64,000 bases of DNA, taken from the NCBI RefSeq assembly GCF_032191835.1, contig NC_083224.1:52018001-52082000 (forward strand), given 5' to 3'. The notes beneath the pieces are model-generated. The model was not told the origin of the DNA. It saw only the letters and a program-made list of their open reading frames with translations, and ran no database searches. Below, piece after piece: positions 19,990 through 61,585 of the stretch; position 1 is the stretch's first letter; every line of letters begins with the position of its first letter. Source of the DNA: Heteronotia binoei (Eukaryota). The translations under genes were made by a program, and so were the position numbers.

Positions 19990-22900
19990 GAATATTTGAA
20001 GTTCTGGGTACATTCTGGATTTAAACATAGGCACTATCCTTACACACACACAGGCATATATCTTTGTCTCAGTGTATGTTGGAGAAACATATCTAAGAAG
20101 CCGTTCTTTCTCATTATTATTATTAGTTTATTTCTATTCCACCCCTTCCCCCTTTTGGGGGTCTCAGAGTGGAGTACAACAATTTAAATTAAGATTACAA
20201 TAAAATCATAATAAAATCAACTTCAGCAACCAGTAAAGTGCAATAGGTTAGTTCAGCATGATGATATGAAGCGAGATAGTATAGCACCACAATACAGTGG
20301 TGCAGCAGGCCATAAGGGCGTAGGGGGAGGCCAACCAATCTAATAGGCGGATAGATGCCCGCTACCTCATCCAAAGACCTGGCGGAACAGCTCTGTTTTA
20401 CAGGCCCTATGAAAGGCCAACAAGCCAGGTAGGGCCTGGATCTCCATAGGGAGCTGATTCCACCAGGTCGGGGCCAGGACTGAAAAAGCCCTGGCCCTGG
20501 TAGAGGCAAGACGGGCATCCCTTGGGCCGGCAACTATCAGAAGATCTCGGGAGGCCAAACAAAGCGACCTCTGGGGTGTATATGGAAGGAGACGGTCCCG
20601 CAGGTATGTTGGTCCCAGGCCACATAAGGCTTTAAAAGTCAAAACTAACACCATGAAATGGATCCGGTATTCTATAGGCAGCCAGTGCAGGTCGCGGAGC
20701 GCTGGCTGTATGCTCACCCATATAGGTGATGCAGTCAGCAGGTGAGCTGCCGCATTCTGCACCTGCTGCAGTTTCCGGATCAGTTTCAGGGGCAAACCAG
20801 CGTAGACCAAGTTACAGTAGTCCAGCCTGGAAGTGGCCATTGCATGGATCACTGTAGCCAGATTTTGGGACGATAGGTATGGTGCTAGCTGCCTGATCTG
20901 CCATAGATGGAAGAAGGCAGACCATGCAGCTGTTGTGACCTGGACTTCCATGGAGAGGGAGGCATCCGGAATCACTCCCAGACTCTTCACCTGCTGGGCT
21001 GGTACCAAAGCGGCATCGCCCAGGGCTGGGAGCTGGATGCACGAACCCACCCCCCTCAATTCAGGTACAGAACCTCAGTTGGATTTAACTTCAGTCGACT
21101 CTGATGTAGCCACCCAGCCACGGCTTCTAATGCCTCTGCCAGCTGTTCAGGGGTGGAAGACAGTCTGCTGTCCATCAACAGGTAGAGCTGGGTGTCATCA
21201 GCGTACTGGTGACAACCCAGTCCAAAACCTTGGGCAATCTGGGCAAGAGGGCGCATATAGATGTTAAATAATGTAGGTGAGAGAATAGCTTCCTGCGGCA
21301 CTCCACATATAAGTGAGTGTCGCAGAGAGATCTGCTCGCCAAGCATCACCCTTTAGCCCCGTCCCCGGAGGAAGGAGGAAAACCATTGTAAGGCCACCCC
21401 CCGTACCCCAGCGACGGCAAGGCGGTGGGTCAATAGGTTGTAGTTGACCATGTCAAATGCTGCTGATAAATCAAGAAAAATCAGCAGTGCTGACCCGCCT
21501 TGGTCCAGATGCCTTCTAAGGTCGTCTGTGAGGGCAACTAGTACCATCTCCATCCCATGGCCCGGGCGGAAGCCGGACTGGAATGGGTCCAGGGCGGATG
21601 TTTCATCCAGGAAAAGCTGCAGCTGCTCCACTACTGCTTTCTCAACTACCTTTCCCAGGAACGGCAGGTTCGAAACTGGGTGGTAGTTAGCTAGGATGCT
21701 AGGGTCCAGTGAAGGTTTTTTCAAAAGCGGGCGAATTACAGCCTCCTTTAATCTCTCTGGGAATGTCCCACTTGTCAGGGACAGGTTAACAATATCATCC
21801 AGAGAGTCCCTGATATCATCCTGGCAAGCCTTCACAAGCCAGGATGGACAGGGGTCCAGGGGGCAGGTGGTAGACTTCACTGCTGCTAGGATCCTGTCTA
21901 CATCCTCCAATGCAAGTCAGCTGAAGCGGTCCAATATTGGACCATCCGACGGCCAAGGAGCTTCCAGTTCACATACTGTATCAACCGTGACTGGGAGGTC
22001 CTGGTGGAGAGTCAAGATTTTATCTGCAAAATATGTCGCAAAACCCTCAGAGCCAATATCCAATTCCCTTTTTGGTTGCTCGATGGCAAGGTTGTCAAAG
22101 ACCAAATCATTCTAAATAATTGGGCTGGGCACAACTGCAGACTCTATGGAGGTCGCATAGAAAGTTTTCTTGGCGGACTTCACAGCCTTCTCATAGACGT
22201 CATAAGCGTTCTATAAGAGGTTCTGGACTCTTCATCACGAGCATACCGCAACTCTCTCTCTTAACCGTCTAAGCTACCGTTTCATCCTTAGGTCCAAGGA
22301 ATACCAAGGAGCTGCTTTGGTACGGCAGCAAAGAGGGCGCCAGGGGGCGATGTTGTCAATGGCAGTGGAGAGTCAGGAATGCCAATCCTCCACAAGCTCA
22401 TCTAACGACCCACCAGGGGGCATCAGATCCCGCAGGGCTTCTTGGAACCATTCTGGGTCCATTTGGCTCTGTGGACGAGCGTAAATCTGCTCGCCACTTA
22501 AACAGGGCGGAAGTTGCAAGTCCAGCCAGACTTTCAAGGCATAGTGGTCTGACCATGGAACAGCATTTGCCGCCATCAAATCCACTGATATTCCTGCCCT
22601 GAAGATCAAATCTAGCGTGTGACCGGCCTGGTGTGTGGGAACGAATACAAATTGGTTGAGTCCCAGCGTCTCCATGGATGACACCAGGTCCTGTGCCTGC
22701 AAGGACGCCGCGTCATCAACGTGGACATTGAAATCCCCCAGAACTAAAAGTCAGGGGAAGTCCAATGCCCAAGTGGACACCGTGTCTAGCAGGGCAGGTA
22801 GGCTCTCCGATGGTGCATCAGGCGGTCGGTACACCACCCAGATCGCCACACTGTCCTCAGTTTCCCACATCAGGCCAGTGCACTCTATGCCAGCAATATT

Positions 22901-23807
22901 CAGATCAGGCAGTGCCCTGAAAGAAAAAGAGTTTCGGATGAGCACAGCAACTCCCCTCCACCCATTTGTCCGAGACTGGTGAAAGACATCAAACCCAGGC
23001 GGGGTAAGCTGGTTCAAGGTGACAGTTTCACCATCCCAAACCCAGGTCTCCGTCATACAGGCCAGGTCGATTTGCTGTTCCATAATAAAATCCCGTAACG
23101 TGGCGGACTTATTATTAATGGACCTGGCATTAACACCAGTGAAGGAGATGGGTAATTTATCCTAGCCCCGCAACCAGCATGCCTCGGGATGGGACATCGG
23201 TGGGAGGATATCCGAGTTTTTCCATATCTCCGACTCCCTCTCTGTTTTCGCAACCTATTCCCACCATCATACCTTCCCCGCCCTATTACAACTGAAATCC
23301 CCGACCCTGACATGGCCTCCTCCATGCAATGCTATACAAGCAGTGTAATTTCTAACAGTTGGAATGCTGACCCCTCTTGCAAAGTTTCTTCTTGACCACG
23401 GGACCAAATTGAAGTTTTGTTTTTCAAAAAAGAAGAAAACAGAATAGGAATTTTGTGGGCATGTGGTGCTAGTTAATAATTATTGTATGGCATTGTGTGT
23501 CGCATAGCCAGGAGATCCAAAGATTGTCTGACAGCCTTAAGTTTTAGCTCTTTTGTGGCAAGCTTGACTTGTTCTGAAAGCGCTGTGATGAACCCAAGGC
23601 CACCTAGCTGGCTTTATGTTTAGGAGTGGGGAATTGAACCCAGTTCTGCAGATTAGAGTCCGCTGCTCTTAACCATTACACCTAACTGGCTCTTAATCAG
23701 CATGTGGTGATAAAGAGTAAGACCTCTTGCTGATGCTGCCTTTCTTTTTTTGTGCTCCCTTCTAGGTTGTCTGGATAATCTTCTACACTGCCATCCATTA
23801 TGATTGA
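15049..23807 (+). CDS. RAB5IF: RAB5-interacting factor (C20orf24/RCAF1/OPTI), complete 4-exon CDS: join(15049-15180,16770-16873,17900-18029,23766-23807), 135 aa
   Basis: Spliced translation MSGGRRKE...WSKALRSDSAWEDK|DEFLDVIYWFRQIIAVILGVIWGIVPLKGFIGIAI|FCLINAGVLYLYFSSFQQIDEEEYGGTWELTKEGFMTSFALFL|VVWIIFYTAIHYD* closely matches human RAB5IF as I recall it; all introns are GT-AG with consistent phases. Confidence 0.97.
16195..16681 (+). mobile_element. L2 LINE 3' fragment in RAB5IF intron 1, (TTAC)n tail
   Basis: Encodes TPGPKEVKLRTTYARAFSTAAPSLWNQLP (L2 ORF2 C-terminus); terminal gccgccctgagcc...gggcgggatataaataaa. Confidence 0.85.
16770..16873 (+). CDS. RAB5IF: RAB5IF coding exon 2
   Basis: Acceptor tctctgcag|GAT, DEFLDVIYWFRQ..., donor AT|gtaagt. 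Confidence 0.96.
17900..18029 (+). CDS. RAB5IF: RAB5IF coding exon 3
   Basis: Acceptor cctctccag|A, FCLINAGVLYLYF...EEEYGGTWELTKEGFMTSFALFL, donor TTG|gtaaat. Confidence 0.96.
18485..19989 (+). mobile_element. 5'-truncated L2 LINE with long open RT frame, (ATCT)n tail; RAB5IF intron 3
   Basis: DPCQSGFHPGYGTET, LLDLSAAFDTVDH, GVPQGAVLSP, YADDTQLY, SRLDYCN, LQLVQNAAARL motifs in ORF 18381-19664. Confidence 0.95.
19904..19989. repeat. (TATC)n microsatellite, tail of the L2
   Basis: Direct read. Confidence 0.95.
20112..23330 (-). mobile_element. Near-complete degenerate L2 ORF2 (APE endonuclease plus RT), antisense in RAB5IF intron 3
   Basis: Frameshifted pieces: NARSINNK..IDLACMTETW (APE), WSDHYAL, LDPCPSWLVK, YHPVSNLPFLGKVVE, DLSAAFD, YADDTQLY, SRLDYCN, AFSVLAPTWWNQLP; (AAT)n tail near 20112-20125. 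Confidence 0.93.
23766..23807 (+). CDS. RAB5IF: RAB5IF coding exon 4 (stop TGA)
   Basis: Acceptor ctcccttctag|GTT, VVWIIFYTAIHYD*. Confidence 0.95.
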   Translation, partial: VVWIIFYTAIHYD

Positions 23808-26800
23808 CAAAATAAGCCAAATCAGTTGTCATAAGTTATTGAAGAACACTTTAAGAAACGGCTTCTGATGGATTGGGGGGAGGTAAACTAAGCCTGCTTT
23901 TATGCCCAAGGTCTGAGGAGATGGGACAAGCTTCATGGCTTCTGAGAAGAGAAATTGAGTCTGTGTTGATTATTTTTTAAAAAGTGTTGCTTTTCTGGAA
24001 CTTAAAAAAGCCATCACAATATTAAGCAGTTCAAGACTGTTCAATCTGAATTTTTTCTGTGACTTTCTCCACTACAGTGACAACCAGCCTCTCTTTGCTA
24101 AAGGGTAAACGTAGTAATTAATTTGTGCCCACTGTGTTGCCCTCTCCAAATGAGATCTGTTCAATTTATGTCTTGTCTTCCATTTGACAGTATACGGTTT
24201 TAAAATAGTAGCCGTTATGAGGCTTTTGGCAGGAGGAAAACTCTGTGGAATTTATTATAGAGCACAGAATGTGACAGTTGTCTTTGACTTGTTTTAAGAA
24301 AATTAAAGGTCTGACTTCAGTAAACTGATTGTATTAAGTATTACTGTTTATAACCGGGTCATTGGGGTTTCTTAAACTTTGGTTGCTTAGTTCAGTTATA
24401 ACCAGAATCTTCAGATTATTTCTTAAAACTTTCATATTATAACTCCTGTTGGGGATTGTTAGGTATACTTGGTTTGTTTAACTTTTTAAAAGTCACAATT
24501 TTAAGAGCACCTTAACGTTTCAATTAGCCAACTAATTAACTTCTCAGAGCCTACCTCAGAGTTCAGTGGTCTAAATGCACAAAATAACTCAAGACATAAT
24601 TCAGAACTCAGTTACTTAGGGGTTTCTACAGGTGTTTGGAGTACAAACACAGCTCATTTTTCAGTTTTAATAAATAATTGAAAAATTAATATAAATGAAG
24701 GCAGCTAATTCCATGGAGCTATTCCATGATGGGAATAGATTGGGCTACAGTTTTGATTTTTTTGTGATTATAGTTATTGTAGATAGTGATAATGGATTAT
24801 GGACTATACACTAGTTTAGGCTACTTATGATTCTTATTCATGGATCCCATCCAGGAATATTTTTAAAATATATAAAGACTATCTACATGGGTATCTTCCA
24901 GAAGTAGACCTGACTGTTCAAATCTTAATTGAAGATCAGTCGACAGAGGACAGAAGGAGGTTTGCACTAAGACTGCCTTATAATGAGAACCTGATGTGAG
25001 TCTTAATATACTGTGGATGGATTCTGCTATTCTTCCTGCTCCTCCATTAAGCCGTTATTTTTTGCTTACTTCACTTTTCAAGGCAACTTTCTAGATACCA
25101 CAAATACCACCTTGCCCCCTTCCATTGTTCAGTTCTAACATTAGAGGCAAATTCCATCATAGGGGAGGCAAAAGTACTGTAGGTTCTGAGAGCCATCACA
25201 GGAGCTTTTCTTGCAGGTCTTTTTTTGCCAACTTACTGAATAGTTTTTCATTCAGACTCCTACTGTATGGATTAGTCTGTCATTCTGCTCTAAAACTTGA
25301 TTTCTGCTAGTATTCAAATTATATTTCTCAATCAGCATCTGATTTTGTTTACTTAAAGCTACAGTCACCCACCAGTATATTAGATCATTTTATACATGAA
25401 CATGCTCTAATAAATGTCATGTGGTTATGAAGTTGGTATGGCTTTTTCATTTCTATTAGTGTTCTTTTATATCTGAGTATTAAAGCTTCAGGACTTATCA
25501 CTTAAGTGGATCTATTGATGTCTGAAAGGATGGAAACACAGATGTGCTTGCTTTGGCATTATGACATCACTTGTCCAAGACCAGGAAATGTAATTCTATT
25601 GTGCCTTATAACTGGGTCCTGTAGAGGGAGGAGAGCAAGCTAAGATCATTTAAATAAATTTGCAAGCAGAAAATCTTTGGAAGTATTGCTTTCTGTGGCA
25701 AGCACAGGCCTTTGTTTGCACCTAAACTCAACCCAGTGATTTATTTTGAATGCTAAAGAGTTGGCTCCGGAATCAATGAAAGAGGGTTCTGGAGTGTGTG
25801 AAGGATATCTTTCCCTCAGGCATGTCTTATAACCTACCTGACCCCATGCATCTGGGGCTGCATGGCTGGAACTGTGATTGGTGAACTAATGAGCCAATAG
25901 CAACCCAAGAATGGATTGTATTGTATTTTAAAAATTTGTATCATATCCCACAACCCAAAAACTGGTTCTCAGAATGACTATCAACATACTCAAAATAATT
26001 AAAATTACAATGGTCAAATAATCTAAAATGTAAAGCACTCAAAACATCATACAAACAACAAATTAAAGAAGCAGAATGGTTTCAAAATTCAGCTACAGAA
26101 CAGAAGGAAAACCAAAAAATGTCATCTAACAGTCTAGGGGAGAATAAGTAGGTCTTCACCTGGTGCTGGAAGGACAAAAAAAATCTAGTCTCATGGGAAC
26201 ATCCATTCATCATTTGCCCAGCAACATTCATAGGCATGAATCCCACCATGGAAAAAACCCTCTTCCAAATGGCTGTTTTTCTCATTGTGATGTATTAGTG
26301 GCTGAGGCATGCTGAACTTTCAGCACAAGACAGGAGCTTAGCTAAAAGTGCCTGTGTGCCTTGCTTTTATGTTGCTTGCCTGGATAGGACAGCTTTACCA
26401 GTATGAACTTCATTTTCTGAAATACAGTCTTTAATGATGGTATGACCATGCATGCAGTGCATTACTTGGGCTAATTCATTATGATGCTGTGTCTGACTGT
26501 TAACTTTTAGTCACAGTATGGCGTGTCAGGCATGCTTTCTTGTGGCTAACTCCTTCACTGTCCTAGTAACATGTAGAAATCCATAGAGCATCAGTATTCT
26601 GTGTGAAACCGGATGCTGGATTAGATGGGACCAGTAGTCTGATCCAGCAAGCTCTCATTATGGTTTTATTCTTTTGAGGCATGGAGCTGTCTTAGGAAGC
26701 TCCCATGTATGAGCAATATGAACTGGAAGTCCAGTATGATTTTATGTTGGGAACTACACTAAGTGCATGGAATTAAGAGCTGTCGTTTCCTGCAGGTGGG

Positions 26801-26949
26801 AGTTTATTTCAAGAGGTGTATGGAAATTTTCAACAATTTCCTTCTTTCCTCTCACTACAGATACCATAATTGTATCCAGCACTGTTAACAAGTACTGAAT
26901 GATAGTTAACTGAATTCTACTTGATCTTAAGAATTTTATACTCTGACCT

Positions 26950-27145
26950 GGGTAGCCCAGGCAAGTCTGATCTCATCAGATCTTGGAAGCTAAGCAGAGC
27001 TAACTGGCAAGTACTGGATGGGAGATCTCCTTGGAATACCAGAGCCAGAAAGGCAGGGGGAGGCTTTATTCAGCTACCTCCCTGAATGCCCTCCATGCCC
27101 CCAGTAGGGGTCAGTCACCAGAGGTCACCATGACTTCCAGGTGTA
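26950..27145 (+). mobile_element. 5S rRNA-derived SINE
   Basis: gatctcatcagatcttggaagctaagcag...gtactggatgggagatctccttggaatacc resembles 5S rRNA box A to box C, followed by a non-5S body. Confidence 0.7.
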
Positions 27146-27446
27146 CACATGCTCATATAATATGTGTGCGTGTGTGTGTATATATATATATTTTCCATTA
27201 TGTTAAGTCCTGTCCATAATGGTCTTCTTTCAAAATACTGTACTAATGCAAACAAGAAACTGAACAGGCAGTTGTTCTGAACTATACATCTGCCCATGCC
27301 AAAATCATGGTTTCTGCCCTCTATGGAAGGTTTGTGGAATCATTGTCCTTGAACTTCCAAATTTTAAGAACATAAGAGAAGCCATGCTGGATCAGGCCAA
27401 CGGCCCATTTTCTCTCCCAAAGAGCTGGAAACTGTAAAGAGAGGTC

Positions 27447-27646
27447 TTAGTTTCTGAACTCACAGCTGTAAGAGCTGAATTTTGGTCGTTGGTACATGAA
27501 TGTGTAAGAATCACAGAAGAATCTTCTGGAAAATTGATCAATTTTCTTGATATCCACAGCAGAAATCTCTTCTGATGTCATTGCCAGATAGTGTCCAAGC
27601 TGAGGAGAGGCCTTTACCACAGGGATATATGATCCTTTCTCATTCT
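27447..27646 (-). CDS. CYLD-like last coding exon (stop TAA at 27449-27447)
   Basis: NEKGSYIPVVKASPQLGHYLAMTSEEISAVDIKKIDQFSRRFFCDSYTFMYQRPKFSSY vs human [58 protein letters not shown]; acceptor ttctttatag|. Confidence 0.92.
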
Positions 27647-27897
27647 CTATAAAGAAAACATAACCAGTTAAAAAAAAGTGAATAATGAAAAGATTACCAA
27701 TAGGCTGAGGAACAGCCATCTAAGGGGCTGAGCAAGGCTCGTTAAGTGTCCAAGCTGAGGAGAGGCCTTTACCACAGGGATATATGATCCTTTCTCATTC
27801 TCTAAAGAAAACATAACCAGTTAAAAAAAAGTGAATAATGAAAAGATTACCAATAGGCTGAGGAACAGCCATCTAAGGGGCTGAGCAAGGCTCGTTA
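27590..27897. repeat. Tandem direct duplication (155 + 153 nt) spanning the CYLD-like last-exon acceptor
   Basis: 27590-27744 and 27745-27897 are identical apart from a 2-nt indel; AGTG microhomology at the junctions. Confidence 0.95.
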
Positions 27898-29461
27898 AGT
27901 GCTTTGGATGAAAGCAATAGAGTTAATTTTAACAATACTAAATCTTGAAAAGACCCAGTTAAATTAATGCACAAATTTAAAGTGAAAATACACCCCACAT
28001 ACATTGATCTGTAGAAACCAGTGCCACCAGTATTTTCTTTAGATTTTTTTAAAAAGTCTAGATCAAGGATTTCCCATGTGGCCTCCATGGGTGCCATAGT
28101 GCACAGACACCTTTCCCGGCATCCATCAAGTGCTCCTGTCCAACAGAGCAGGCTTCTGATTTGCTACTGGAGGTCCAGGTGGAGATGCAGATGAAAATGA
28201 CTTCATTGCAGCAGCAACTGCCTCCACAATGCTGGTTTTATTCTTTCCCAGTTTTTAAGTTACCCTTCTCTTCTGGGCTTCCTCTATGTGGACTCTGCCT
28301 CCAGTGGCAACGATTTGTTACCTTGTGTTAGAGTTCCAAAGGTGCCCACAAGTTCAAAAATGTCAGAGGTCTCCAACAGTCCAAAGTAACTTTTGTGTTC
28401 CAAAGAACAATGATTCTCAGCCTTTTGTATCTTACATCCCACCAATCATCTGTCAAAGAACCTTAGTCCTGCCATGACAGAAACAACCCCCCCCACACAC
28501 ACACACACACATCTTTCCATAAAGGACACACAGCCCCAGTCCAGCAAGGGGCTTGCCAGTGGCATCCTTAGCACTCTGCACAAGGATCCAGTAGCAGATA
28601 CCAAACAGTGCAGATGAAACCAGATTAAGAAGGGAGAGCTGTGTGCAGAAACTAGCTTATGCATATAGAGTTTCTCTAACCCAGTCCCCATGCACACAGC
28701 AATTCTTCTCCCTCCCAGCTTTAAAAAAAAAAATTGGCAAGTTAGTATGTTATAACGATTATTGGTATATCAGGTTTCCTGAATCTCCCATTTTCATTTT
28801 TAAAAGTCTCCAGCCCAAGGGTATGAATTTAATCACAAATCAAAAAAGCTCCTCTGTGTGTGTAGGAAATGACTGCTGCAGGTATGGGACAGGGAGAATC
28901 TTGTAGACATGGAAACCATCCAGGCTTTGCTGTGATTTTCCCCAAAACTTTACAACAAAGCAATGTTGGAGAAAAAGTAGGGAAACCCCAGGAAGTACAT
29001 GAATGTATTATGATGCTGTGGGGAAGCAGGAACTCCCCACCCCTGCTCCTATCATCATGGGACCTGGAGTGAATAACCGATGTGGAAGTGGCCATGGTGT
29101 CCTGTCTGGGGATCAGAAGCATGTTGAATGCACTGGCAGCCATCAGGAATGCGGAGGCTGGGCTTAGAGACTCACGTTGTGATAGCTAAGCTCCAGATGA
29201 TAAATACTTCTAAGAAATGTGAGGTGGGTAGGGATCAGTAAGTATGTGGGCATCATTTTCTGCTGCATCCATGTAGCTAAAGAAAACTCAGTCTTGTGTG
29301 TTTACAGGTGGATTGCTCTACCAATATGTATTGCTTCATAGTGTAATCATTAGCAGCAGGAGCAGCCCGCCCACTAGGTGAGAGCTGTAGAGGCTGTTAT
29401 TACACCAACTGGGAACAGTGTTACCACAGTGTCATTCAGGACAACAGAAACTTGCTGAGAC

Positions 29462-29915
29462 TGAGAGGGGAAAAGATCTTGGGGTCATAGTGGATAGCTC
29501 GATGAAAGTGTCAACCTAGTGTGTTGTAGCAATGAAGAAGGCAAATTCTATGCTATGGTTTATTAGCAAAGGGATTGAGAATTAAACAGCCAATATTGTA
29601 ATGCCCCTGTATAGATCTATGTGATGACCACAGGAATCAACAGCTTTAAAAGGGGATTAAATACGACAGATCAGGCAGCTAGCACCATACAGTCTATCTG
29701 TGATTATTAGCAATGGTGACTGAGGGGAACCAACATGTTGAGAGGCTCTAATCCTCTGAATCCCAGAGCCAGGAACCAACATCAGGGAAAGGCCTCAGCC
29801 TCTATTCCCTGTTGTTGGCCCTCCAGAGAAACTGTTTGGTCTCTGTGTGAAACAGGATGCTGGCCTAGATGGACCACTGGTCTGATCCAGTGGGGCTCTT
29901 ATTATGTTCTTATGT
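29462..29915 (+). mobile_element. CR1 LINE 3' fragment (degenerate RT end and 3' UTR)
   Basis: gatcttggggtcatagtggatagctcgatgaaagtgtcaac...aagaaggcaaattctatgct and terminal ggaccactggtctgatccagtggggctcttattatgttcttatg. Confidence 0.8.
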
Positions 29916-30514
29916 GAACCTAAGAGTTGGAAAAGACTGGTGCTTGCACAGAGGACTACCTTTTTAAGCAGAGTTAGTGGCAGTCTCAAGTGCTACCCCT
30001 GGCCTTGGCACCATTGCCTGCTTCTCCACCACCCAGCTCCAACATGCTCCTTCCCTCTGGCTTGGCGGAGGCTTGGGGCATGGTGGCCTGCCTAGCTTGC
30101 CATCTTCTCCCACAGTAGGAGGGAAGGAGACAGGAACAGGCAGGCACCAGCTCCACCATGCTCCTTTTCTCTGGCTTCACAGCTTGAGTTGCAGTGGCTT
30201 TCCCTGCTTGACCCTTCCACCCTGCCCTGTCCTACCAAGAGCAGGCAAATGACAGTTCTGTTGTGCTCCCTCCTTCTGGCTTCACAGAGGCTTTGAGTAC
30301 TTGGAGTGCACCCAGGCCGTGGCAGGGCTGTGTGCTTCTGGCAGGTGGGCACTGTTAGTGGCTGGCCTAAGACACCAAAAGCCCTCAGATGGGCCCTGGT
30401 TTGCTGATTGTTGAGTTGTGTGCAATCTTTCTGGATCAGTAGGTCTTCAGTTTGGCAGACACATTTCTAACACAACCAGCATAAAATCTTTACCATGGTT
30501 ACAAACTTGCTTAC

Positions 30515-30623
30515 CTTGGTCAACCAAGCTTGTGAGGTCAAGTTCTAGAGAAGGATACATTGATGAAAATGTCTTAAACCCCTTTCCAAACCTTGGCATT
30601 TGTAAGATGAGGCATGAAGGAAT
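30515..30623 (-). CDS. CYLD-like USP exon (109 nt)
   Basis: IPSCLILQMPRFGKGFKTFSSMYPSLELDLTSLVDQ vs human [36 protein letters not shown]; ctctttcag| and G|gtaagc. Confidence 0.95.
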
Positions 30624-31309
30624 CTGAAAGAGAAGAGCCATTTTGAAGACTCTCTGCTAACAGATTTGCAGACGTTGGCTCAAGAAAGACTGGACAACAG
30701 ACAAGGGTTGCTACATGTGTTTTTGCTGATATTTGAAAGACAGTTCTCTAGCCTAGAAGACTCTATGAAATTTTCATAGACTTGGAAATGCAGTACATAT
30801 CCGTTTGGATTCAGATTTGAGTTCAGCCACAAGATCCTTCCATGGGCAGGCCACAAATAATAATTTAAAAAATCTTACCCACCTGCCGTTTCCCATCTAT
30901 ATAGTCAGGGTATTGAGAATTTACAGCGGCATTGTTAGACTAAACATAAATGGTATGAAGCACATTACATATTAAAAGTGCTATGGAATTTATGTAAAAC
31001 AAAAATAATGACAAGACTCTGTCACTGAAGACAGGAATCCTCCCTAGCACAGGCACAATGGTCTATTCTCATTCCCACCCAACACTGTACATTAGCATTA
31101 TGAAGAACCTGAGATCCGTCTGTTTCTCCCACATCCCAATATAGCTTTCCCTCCTTGCACTGGCCCTCAAGCTTCAGCGAGATCAGAGGGAAGAAATGGG
31201 GCTCTGTTGAAGTACATGGGACTCCCTGTGCTTACAGGCACTGCTTCCACCAGGAAGGAGTATCGTCTGCAAAAGGGAGTGATACAACATTACTTATCTC
31301 ATTACCTAC

Positions 31310-31439
31310 CTCAGCAAATTTCAAGTCATAGGAAAGCAGAGATTCTTCCAGTCATTGCTGCACAGCGGGCATGTTGACCATACTGTCTCTTGCCACAAGA
31401 ACTTGATAACAATTATACTCAAGTACTTCGTTGCCTGCC
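31310..31439 (-). CDS. CYLD-like USP exon (130 nt) with an in-frame TGA at 31354-31352
   Basis: AGNEVLEYNCYQVLVARDSMVNMPAVQQ*LEESLLSYDLKFAE vs human SAGQKVQDCYFYQIF...[21 protein letters not shown]; cctag| and GAG|gtaggt. Confidence 0.9.
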
Positions 31440-31958
31440 CTAGGATTTCACAGCAAAAGAATACAAAGTTGTTTAGAGGCCTATTATGTCTTTTCCCCCC
31501 AGACAAATGCATCAGCTAGCATCAAAATCTGTTTAAAAATGAGAGATATATAGGAAGCACCTCTGAGCTCACTTCAAATTCTTAGGCCAAAACTAATCTA
31601 GCTGTAGCATGGGAATGCATTTATTGCATCTGAAGAGAAAAGGGCAAGGAGTCTGTTCTATGAAGAACTAGATTCAAGTCCAGGGGCACCTTAGAGACCA
31701 ACAAGATTTTTGGGGTGGGTGGAGTATGAGCTTTCTAGAGTCAAAGTTCTCTTTGTCAGATACCTTCTTTTCATAATGTCACTCAGCAGGAACTCATTTG
31801 CATATTAGGCCATATCCCCTGACATCAAGCCAGCTGGAACTGCATTGCTGTGTATTCCTGCTCAAAAAAAGCCCTGCCGCTCAGTAGATATATGGGCTTC
31901 TAACTCCACCTAGTATGTGCCTGCCAGGCCAGAGGGTGCAGAGTCTCTGAACCAGCTT

Positions 31959-32342
31959 TAGGGCTGCCAAGCCCCCATCTGGGCGGGGATTCCCCCACCC
32001 AGGGGGTTCCCAACCCACTGGCCCACATTGGGCCAGCAGGGGAAACCCCCCCGCAAACGTCATCAGCGCAATGACATCACCAGGAAGTGATGTCATCGCG
32101 CCAGTGCATGGCAGCTGCTCTGAGCATTTCTGGGGAAACTTTATGGTTTTCCCAGATGCTCTAGCCATTTGGGAGGGAAAACTCTATGGTATAAATAGGT
32201 ACCATAGAGCTTTCCCATCCCAAATGGCTAGAGCATCCGGGAAAACCATAGAGTTTTCCTGGAAACACCTAGAGCAGCCACGAGTGCCGTTCCCAGTGCC
32301 ATGACATCACTTCCAGAGAGCGGAGAGGTCTTGGCAACCCTA
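31959..32342. mobile_element. TAGGG(C/T)TGCCA-type hAT MITE
   Basis: tagggctgccaag ... ttggcaacccta terminal inverted repeats. Confidence 0.65.
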
Positions 32343-32602
32343 GCCAGCCTATCCCCACCCAGTCTCAGGCCAATTCACATTCTACACATATTCCCCTCTC
32401 ATAGACTGTTGACATGTTTGGCCTGGGAGTTCCCTGCAACACAAAGGGGCCCATATTGGATCATGACTACAGCACATGTGGGAAAGAACCTTTTCCTGCC
32501 TCCATGCCATTTTCCCTACCTGAAATAGCACCAGGAAATACTATTTGCTGCTCTAGGGAAACTAATGTAACCAGCCACATATGTAAATTTTTGTAACAGA
32601 AG

Positions 32603-32878
32603 AAGGTGATGATGATGATATTGGATTTATATCCCACCCTGCACTCCAGATCTCAGAGTCTCAGAGTGGCTCACAATCTCCTTTACTTTCCTCCCCCACA
32701 ACAGACACCCTGTGAGGTAGGTGGGGCTGACAGAAGCTGCCATTTCAAGGACAACCTCTGCCAGAGCTATGGCTGACCCAAGGCCATTTCAGCAGGTGCA
32801 AGTGGAGGAGTGGGGAATCAAACCCGGTTCTCCCAGATAAGAGTCCACACCCTTAACCACTACACTAAACTGACTCTC
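32603..32878 (-). mobile_element. Squam3-type tRNA SINE
   Basis: Reverse complement of the 13789 SINE. Confidence 0.85.
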
Positions 32879-33405
32879 TGCTGTGGCTGTTCGAGACTGG
32901 GAAAACAGTCTCCTTGAATGTCACAGTCCTGATTCAAGCGAAGTCCCTGTACGCTTGGGAATAAGTTCCAAGCATAGATCTACCAGAGCACGTCTGACTG
33001 AAAGGCCATGGTAGCCAAAAGGCAATCAGCCCATCATACATCAGCAATCCATTGCTTCCTTTTATTCATTGCCAGTGCTAGGGCCTCTTTTGAAAGAAAT
33101 TGGACACAACATTTTGGTTTGCTTTCAAGTCAGTTGCCACAGCTGCAAGGGCTAAGGCTGTTTTCCCACCACCACCCCAGCTTTTAATAAGGAGGATGGG
33201 CAGCTTTGCGTGCCAGGCTCATGTCCCCTCCCCCCTGACTTGTCCAAAACTGCTGGGCTCCACCCTTAGGCTCCATCTAGGTACTGGATTTAAAAAAAAA
33301 CAAATTAATTGCAAGAGTTTTCAGCCTAAGTCATGAATCATGCTTGTGAGACCAAGAGTGGCACTCAAATGACGAGATAAAAAACCCAACACATCAAATT
33401 CTTAC

Positions 33406-33472
33406 TTGATTTTGAGCAAGGGCTCTATAGCCAGGACCTCTCCTAGAAGGACATTCAGGAATTCCTCTGGAT
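33406..33472 (-). CDS. CYLD-like USP exon (67 nt)
   Basis: DPEEFLNVLLGEVLAIEPLLKIK vs human [23 protein letters not shown]; tttacag| and AA|gtaaga. Confidence 0.93.
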
Positions 33473-34420
33473 CTGTAAACCAGATCAGCCATTAGAATAA
33501 CAAAAACCCTGGTGCAGCACAGTGGCTAAGAATGACCTGTGACTGGGAGGTCCTAGTTTAGATTTCATCTTTGTCACAAGCTCACTAGGTGGCCATCTGC
33601 AAGCCAGTCATGGTCAACTCTACTGGCAACATTGGTCCACCTTACAGGAAAAGGATACTGCAGTAAATATATCAGAAGAGCTTTTAACAATGAAATCACA
33701 AGGCATTCATTAAAGCAGTAATAGGGTTGCCACCTCCAGGTGACACCTAGAGATCTCCTGCTATTACAATTGATTTTCAGATGACCAAGATCAGTTCCCT
33801 TGGAAAAAGTGGCTGCTTTGGATGGTGGACTCTGTGGCATTATACCCTGCTGAGATCATCCATCCCCTACCAAACCCCACCCTCCCCAGGCTCCACCTCC
33901 CAAACCTCCAGGTATTTGCCAACCCAGAGCTGGCAACCCTAGAAATATGTCATCCAGGTCAATAGTGTTATGGGTACTGGAGTAAGCTTGGATTCTGGGT
34001 ACTGTGAGTTACTCTGTTTTATGGAATTGGCCAAAGCAGCATGCTAGAGGAAACCAGAGCTCATGACAAAAGAAATGACAATGTTTCTTATTGATATTAC
34101 TTCAGTTAACCTTAATGGCTAGGAAATGACTCTGTCCAAGCACCCATTAGGGTTTGAAGAATATGATCCCCCCCCCCCCGGAGTGATTCTACCTGTGTTC
34201 CATTAATACATCTGCAATTAAAACAAATGGCACAGAAATGCTAACAGACTCCTCAACCTGTCCTCCAAAAGGAATCCACCCAGGTAAACGCTACCTTTTG
34301 AATTTCTCACTGCCCAAGTAAGTGGGAGGGTGTAAAAATATGCAAATTTAAGGGAGGGAGGGGAGTGCAGTGTAGCAAGGTCGCTCTACCCAGCGAAGAG
34401 GTCATGCTCTTGTAGCTCAC

Positions 34421-41109: not shown

Positions 41110-41546
41110 CATGCCCTCACCAGCATTCACCTCAATGAGAACCATTTTCAGATCTTCATTGCCAGGATTCCTGAGCCGTTCCCAGAAGCCTCTCACAATG
41201 CCAGCTGTCATTACGCTGCCATATCTCAGGAAGACCACATCATGGAGTTTCAGGAAGCAAATGGAGGTGAAGTGCTGCTCATTGCAAAAAAGGCTGTACC
41301 TCTTTTTGGGGCTGTCAATGGCGAGCAAGAGGGCAGCCTGATGGTGATTTAGTGGGTTTATGTGGCTGCTCATCAAGGCTATGACAGGCCTAGATTTCTG
41401 GTCAACAATGTGGCCTATGTTGTGTTTCCCCTTGATGAAGCATCCAATAGACCCCAAAGGGATCTTCTTTCTGCCTGCATGGATCTCTTGACTCTCAATG
41501 AAGGCCTCCTTCTTCTCCAGCACAAATTCCATGGCTGGCAATAGAC
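41110..41546 (-). CDS. CYLD-like first coding exon (N-terminal region and start of a CAP-Gly1-like fold); ATG at 41532
   Basis: Acceptor ttttgcag|GTC at 41546, Kozak GCCAGCCATGG, open frame MEFVLEKKEAF...KKIPLGSIGCFIK...LLLAIDSPKKRYSLFCNE...GIVRGF...MVLIE; candidate donors after 41131, 41121 or 41110 (cannot choose between them). Confidence 0.85.
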
Positions 41547-61162: not shown

Positions 61163-61585
61163 CAAGAGTAGCCAAACTTACTTAATGTAAGAGCCACATA
61201 GAATAAACATTAGATCTTTGAGAGCTGCAAGACATGAACATCAGATGTTTGAGAGATACAANNNNNNNNNNNNNNNNNNNNNNNNNNNNNNNNNNNNNNN
61301 NNNNNNNNNNNNNNNNNNNNNNNNNNNNNNNNNNNNNNNNNNNNNNNNNNNNNNNNNNNNNNNNNNNNNNNNNNNNNNNNNNNNNNNNNGGAGGGAGTTA
61401 GAAAGAAAACAATTTTAACCTTAGATGCCTTCTCTAAGCTGCCAGCTGGCTTGGATTGGAGAAGTGATTTAAAGAGACAAATGCCTTCTCCAAGCCAGCC
61501 GACGGGGCGGTGGGGGCTTCAAGAGCCACACAATATGTGTGAAAGAGCCACATGTGGCTCCTGAGCCACAGTTTGACCACCCCTG
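61163..61585. mobile_element. hAT MITE spanning the assembly gap
   Basis: caagagtagccaaac / gtttgaccacccctg ends, perfect TSD gcttatac (61155-61162 and 61586-61593). Confidence 0.75.
61262..61389. other. Assembly gap (128 N)
   Basis: Direct read. Confidence 1.

Follow-up and report, generated by a model that had tools for sequence, protein, structure and literature searches.

The 64,000-nt window, by which we mean the whole stretch of gecko DNA analysed here, contains a copy of CYLDL, the duplicate of CYLD, that is probably a young pseudogene specific to the lineage of this gecko. A first-pass annotation of the window had noticed an in-frame TGA in one exon of this gene and had offered four options to account for it: recent pseudogenisation, a polymorphic null allele, a consensus error and regulated readthrough. 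Recent pseudogenisation is the option that the present results favour, in that the gene carries several independent disabling lesions while its orthologues are intact elsewhere, as is expected of a unitary pseudogene, and the dN/dS of the window branch (0.33) is no higher than those of its relatives. CYLDL is the unstudied sister of CYLD, a tumour suppressor and regulator of NF-kB, and has already been lost in mammals. A gecko in the early stages of losing it would indicate that a second lineage of tetrapods can do without the gene, and geckos without CYLDL would be natural knockouts for research on this gene. For annotation, the locus should be labelled as a pseudogene rather than as a candidate for readthrough or for a selenoprotein.

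CYLDL is the whole-genome-duplication partner of CYLD in vertebrates, and Vlasschaert et al. 2017 (PMC5381560) report its deletion from every mammal. Fishes, amphibians and squamates have kept the gene, and the window copy appears to adjoin RAB5IF as in other geckos. The last coding open reading frame (ORF) in the window, at 27646-27447, gave matches to structures 2VHF and 3WXE in the C-terminal part of the CYLD USP domain, and exon 3 carries the catalytic Cys box as GIRGQCNSCYLDTTLF, aligned to GIQGHYNSCYLDSTLF in the human CYLD USP domain (2VHF). A profile-free search with the large first exon as the query retrieved a protein of Gekko kuhli (P0001, 77% identical) and a caecilian protein (P0002), and word searches from P0002 and then from the Paroedura protein P0051 led to a family annotated as 'ubiquitin carboxyl-terminal hydrolase CYLD-like'. 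This family occurs in amphibians and squamates, has proteins of about 550 aa with Pfam domain PF00443 and is separate from true CYLD (900-950 aa). It was reached through the representative search and full-length relatives because Pfam gave no match for single-exon ORFs of the window gene; a PDB search with the 28-residue piece preceding the exon-7 stop also gave no match, the piece being too short.

The window exons are 72-77% identical to the CYLD-like proteins of Paroedura, Sphaerodactylus, Euleptes and Eublepharis, and the introns are colinear with those of Gekko kuhli. An EMC6/RAB5IF-family gene is the downstream neighbour of CYLDL in three other gecko loci (L001, L003 and L004, from the species named below), and in the window two exons resembling RAB5IF looked open and conserved, although the tblastx output behind this observation was mostly noise and the evidence is weak. 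With its best similarity to CYLD-like proteins and its conserved neighbourhood, the window locus is, judged by sequence comparison, the orthologous copy of CYLDL. It shares with the CYLDL described previously (PMC5381560) the family, the orthologous locus and the RAB5IF/EMC6-family neighbour, and its Cys box, USP core exons and C-terminus align to annotated CYLD-like proteins of the four gecko genera above, other squamates and amphibians. Unlike intact CYLDL, however, the window copy has a nonsense codon, lacks the B-box exon and the exon with the catalytic His and Asp, and bears further lesions in splicing and phase; and unlike in mammals, where CYLDL is wholly absent, what is left in the window is a decaying copy.

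As a reference for exon structure we used CYLDL of Paroedura picta, in which exact spliced matching of P0051 to locus L002 defined 11 coding exons of 393, 133, 130, 108, 80, 67, 130, 109, 116, 190 and 200 nt. Each of these exons, with 40-nt flanks, was located in the window and in the loci of Gekko kuhli (L001), Sphaerodactylus townsendi (L003) and Eublepharis macularius (L004); the window exons were searched one by one and were never joined into a spliced model. All 11 exons are open in Paroedura and Sphaerodactylus. In the window the gene has the following features:

Exon 1, 41532-41121, minus strand: ATG at 41532; 412 nt; 2-nt deletion between 41126 and 41125.
Exon 2, 40808-40676, minus strand: donor GC at 40675-40674.
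Exon 3, 38244-38103, minus strand: catalytic Cys box; Q>R and H>Q, both window-specific, at otherwise conserved positions.
Exon 4, 37718-37611, minus strand: intact.
Exon 5, 34500-34421, minus strand: intact.
Exon 6, 33472-33406, minus strand: intact.
Exon 7, 31439-31310, minus strand: 130 nt, entered in phase 2; both splice sites intact (AG acceptor, GT donor); in-frame TGA.
Exon 8, 30623-30515, minus strand: intact.
Exons 9 and 10, minus strand: absent from the window; deletion junction at 28487-28530.
Exon 11 (last), 27646-27447, minus strand: intact; stop codon TAA at 27449-27447.
Tandem duplication, 27590-27901, minus strand: takes in the 3' end of the last intron, the exon-11 acceptor and exon 11 as far as its nt 57.

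Exon 3 retains the catalytic Cys box (GIQGHxNSCYLD), with the two window-specific replacements beside the Cys, and the catalytic His box and Asp of a functional CYLD-type USP are missing from the window. The reading frame is also interrupted, both by the TGA in exon 7 and by the phase-changing 2-nt deletion in exon 1.

Exon 7 translates on the minus strand as AGNEVLEYNCYQVLVARDSMVNMPAVQQ, a stop and then LEESLLSYDLKFAE, with the TGA in frame at 31354-31352 in the context CAA-TGA-CTG-G; the translation and the extent of the exon are as the first-pass annotation described them, and an AG acceptor and a GT donor flank it. That annotation had set the exon beside human CYLD, whereas CYLDL orthologues are the appropriate reference. 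It had also proposed that a TTA-to-TGA point change produced the stop and that the codon be compared in related geckos. The comparison bears this out: each of the four other geckos has TTA (Leu) here, and one T>G transversion accounts for the stop. Leu at this site is invariant, being found in 19/19 non-gecko CYLDL proteins as well as in the four gecko orthologues. The orthologous exon is 130 nt long in each of the four other geckos, and skipping it would therefore shift the frame, as had been stated. The expectation of nonsense-mediated decay also holds: from the TGA it is 42 nt to the junction of exons 7 and 8, and the 109 nt of exon 8 bring the distance to the last exon junction to 151 nt. 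The 50-55-nt rule predicts nonsense-mediated decay for a stop at such a distance, and this should be the fate of the transcript. The codon after the TGA is CTG in the window, Gekko kuhli and Eublepharis, CTC in Paroedura and CTA in Sphaerodactylus. Because CTG is common to the window, Gekko kuhli and Eublepharis, the context that had been called readthrough-prone is, as the aligned codons read, a plain ancestral Leu-Leu codon pair.

The TGA had been taken for the only stop or frameshift in the gene, which proved incorrect: exon 1 has a 2-nt deletion, exon 2 a GC donor, exons 9 and 10 are deleted and the exon-11 acceptor is duplicated. In exon 1 the 2 nt are missing eight bases ahead of the conserved donor, with GTGGAGCTGCTG followed by GT in the relatives versus GTGAA--TGCTG followed by GT in the window. 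The 412 nt counted from the ATG consequently leave the conserved donor in phase 1 instead of phase 0, with a stop after seven exon-2 codons. A possible cryptic donor ten bases upstream, GAG/GTGAAT (GT at 41130-41129), would keep the frame at a cost of four residues. The exon-2 donor is GC in the window versus GT in 4/4 relatives, and a 10-nt intron deletion lies just behind it.

Exon 9 (116 nt) encodes the B-box and exon 10 (190 nt) the His and Asp boxes (NHYVAF...FFDSMA). Neither exon had a tblastn or blastn match anywhere in the window, whereas exon 10 is present in all of L001-L004. The introns align colinearly up to approximately 28530, and in each of the comparisons with Gekko, Paroedura and Eublepharis the alignment picks up again at 28486 exactly, with a (GT)n-G8 run at the junction. 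We estimate the size of the deletion at about 1.9-2.3 kb from the sequence that the alignment skips, which holds both exons and amounts to about 2.3 kb in Eublepharis and 1.9 kb net in Gekko. The two exons total 306 nt, so their loss preserves the frame. The tandem duplication is of about 156 nt (27901-27745 versus 27748-27590), its copies are 98.7% identical (2/159 positions differ), and the duplicated acceptor region of exon 11 creates a decoy acceptor. Five differing changes fall within 14 kb: two substitutions, one of them at a splice site, two deletions, of 2 nt and of about 2 kb, and a duplication. Three of these lesions do not strictly disable the gene: a transcript could avoid the exon-1 deletion through the cryptic donor, GC donors such as that of exon 2 are able to splice, and losing exons 9 and 10 keeps the frame.

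We estimated selection with Nei-Gojobori counts over the 429 codons common to all five geckos, summed over per-exon codon columns. Pairwise dN/dS among the five geckos ranged from 0.22 to 0.35, and three-point estimates for individual branches, with bootstrap 95% confidence intervals (CI), were as follows:

Window branch: dS 0.131, dN 0.043, dN/dS 0.33 (CI 0.19-0.58).
Gekko kuhli branch: dS 0.112, dN 0.042, dN/dS 0.38 (CI 0.22-0.66).
Paroedura branch: dS 0.125, dN 0.039, dN/dS 0.32 (CI 0.19-0.55).

Relaxed constraint, in the sense of dN/dS rising towards 1, was not found on the window branch, the value of which equals those of its relatives. The first-pass annotation had suggested comparing dN/dS before and after the TGA, with values near 1 expected of a plain pseudogene; the exons before and after it gave 0.36 and 0.24, a difference of no note. 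Replacements unique to the window number 22, compared with 19 in Gekko kuhli and 20 in Paroedura, and there is no excess of window-specific replacements at conserved sites (5/22 versus 6/20 in Paroedura). CYLDL therefore appears to have been under its usual moderate constraint for most of the window branch, and the upper bound of the CI permits neutrality over at most roughly a third of it. Because the dN/dS of 0.33 is the same as in the relatives, inactivation should be recent relative to the length of this branch. By our own rough estimate from approximate mutation spectra, a coding sequence of this size would collect about 200 small disabling mutations for each unit of neutral divergence, in which case the three small lesions might correspond to about 0.015 substitutions per site, or about a tenth of the branch (dS 0.13). 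Taken with a duplication that differs at 2/159 positions, they would be consistent with a time under neutrality worth about 0.01-0.02 substitutions per site.

The history that we consider most probable is a recent pseudogenisation of CYLDL in the lineage of the window gecko, with the TTA>TGA change as one of about five lineage-specific lesions. Any transcript would have its premature stop far ahead of the last exon junction and should be degraded by nonsense-mediated decay, and any protein product would be without two of the three catalytic residues. The remaining coding sequence would still look constrained because there has been too little time for neutral substitutions. The locus resembles a unitary pseudogene in being a single orthologous copy with conserved synteny that is intact in related species and has accumulated several independent disabling mutations. 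It differs from a typical one in that its dN/dS is still unraised, which would put it at a very early stage of decay.

Besides the three lesions that do not strictly disable the gene, two observations run counter to pseudogenisation. Unrelaxed dN/dS would also fit a gene that is still functional, and the (GT)n-G8 run at the deletion junction is a setting prone to assembly errors. Both also speak for a reading in which the real gene is intact and sequencing, polishing or mis-joining introduced the TGA, perhaps along with the duplication and the two deletions (2 nt in exon 1; exons 9 and 10). A near-identical short tandem duplication can likewise arise in assembly, and contigs of two metatranscriptomic RNA runs covered only repeats over 27475-33474, the depth being zero at the deletion junction as well as over exons 7, 8 and 11. 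An origin of this kind nevertheless seems improbable to us. All five kinds of change within 14 kb would need to be errors, and the 2-nt deletion lies outside any homopolymer. The flanking introns are colinear with those of the relatives, the CYLDL region has no N gap (the only one in the window is at 61262-61389), and the two neighbouring RAB5IF exons are open and conserved, on the weak tblastx evidence mentioned above. With five unlike changes in 14 kb of otherwise colinear, gap-free sequence, wholesale assembly error is unlikely. We give slightly less credence still to the idea that the lesions are real but sit on one unfixed haplotype in a species that retains a working CYLDL allele. The unchanged dN/dS and the 98.7% identity of the duplicated copies point to very young lesions, as such a segregating null allele would require, but several independent lesions on one haplotype imply some time free of selection, which is easier to envisage after fixation.

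Regulated readthrough, which the first-pass annotation had itself ranked as least likely, is not supported. The description of the stop context as leaky stands in so far as UGA followed by C belongs to the weakest class of terminators (PMC4132726). Loughran et al. 2014 (PMC4132726) define the efficient readthrough motif as UGA-CUAG, within which UGA-CUA is universally conserved; by itself UGA-CUA yields no more than 1.5% readthrough. The window has UGA-CUGG. The window therefore shares the C and U after the UGA with the genes of the UGA-CUAG class (OPRL1, OPRK1, AQP4, MAPK10 and MDH1; PMC4132726) but has G instead of A as the third downstream base. Its stop is also inside the USP fold rather than at the end of an ORF and is conserved in no relative, the codon being TTA in four geckos and Leu in 19/19 other CYLDL proteins. 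Its context was inherited from sense codons and, CTG being the ancestral codon, nothing has evolved around the stop.

Readthrough might in principle still yield a low level of full-length but catalytically dead CYLDL, acting as a pseudo-deubiquitinase or adaptor decoy, and the weakness of UGA-C termination, the frame-keeping loss of exons 9 and 10 and the low dN/dS (0.24) in the exons after the TGA are all compatible with such a product. We regard it as very improbable, however. Arg, Trp or Cys would replace an invariant Leu, a probable frameshift and a weakened donor precede the TGA, the low dN/dS is accounted for by the youth of the lesions, and the product would still be without the catalytic His and Asp exons. 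The chance is just as slight that the locus is living as a whole, with the exon-1 cryptic donor in use, exons 9 and 10 lost without a shift of frame and the UGA-C stop decoded at a low level, which together would give a catalytically inactive CYLDL. SPATA2 is an adaptor of CYLD, and an inactive CYLDL, if made, could perhaps still bind ubiquitin chains or a SPATA2-family adaptor; it would then be a naturally evolved pseudo-deubiquitinase, its amount set by readthrough. That the UGA encodes selenocysteine has a probability that we consider negligible, as nothing beyond the codon itself speaks for it and every orthologue has Leu, not Cys or Sec, at this site. The first-pass annotation had suggested a search for a SECIS element below 27447, and an Rfam scan of both strands of 24000-32000, 3' UTR included, matched no SECIS family at E<=1, its sole hit being the sub-threshold 5S-like one described below. 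On these grounds the selenoprotein reading was rejected.

CYLDL also shows small deletions in another gekkonid. Gekko kuhli has a 7-nt deletion early in exon 1 (L001:9880-9910), with a frameshift after MEFVLEKKEAFIVS, because of which the annotated model P0001 starts at a downstream Met, and a 2-nt deletion (L001:28680-28700) that changes the last six residues. These frame-breaking deletions hint that the window gecko may not be an isolated case, and CYLDL may be decaying independently in this second gekkonid. In Eublepharis macularius (L004:23233-23503) the aligned last exon is 9 nt shorter, with an earlier stop, and the annotated model P0134 (313 aa) runs from exon 9 into the intron despite an open exon 10 with the His box at about L004:21120-21310. 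In Euleptes, model P0133 in the same way runs on into intron 7 and ends there. CYLDL of Paroedura is short of 21 nt in the ancestral start region (L002:2961-3010), and its protein begins MEAFIV, versus MEFxxEKKEAFIV in the window and the other geckos.

All squamate CYLDL proteins (P0033, P0039, P0041 and P0051) have lost the Cys and His zinc ligands from the second half of the B-box, which reads FCxLCERQVHSH in the amphibian proteins compared (P0002, P0015, P0016 and P0030). The squamate B-box is thus probably degenerate even where the gene is intact.

Other elements lie within and beside the gene. The CYLDL intron repeats at 29675-30074, 31784-31877 and 32600-32880 reach a summed depth of up to about 700,000 from RNA-run contigs of 90-99% similarity and are likely to be abundant transcribed SINE-type elements. 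In the 3' flank of CYLDL, 26939-27053 on the plus strand gave a full-length but sub-threshold match to 5S rRNA (27.6 bits, the gathering score being 38; E 0.02) and may be a SINE derived from 5S or a 5S copy in decay. Between CYLDL and RAB5IF, 20367-23083 on the minus strand holds long, reverse-transcriptase-like ORFs (e.g. of 230 aa and 185 aa) and appears to be a non-LTR retrotransposon insertion.
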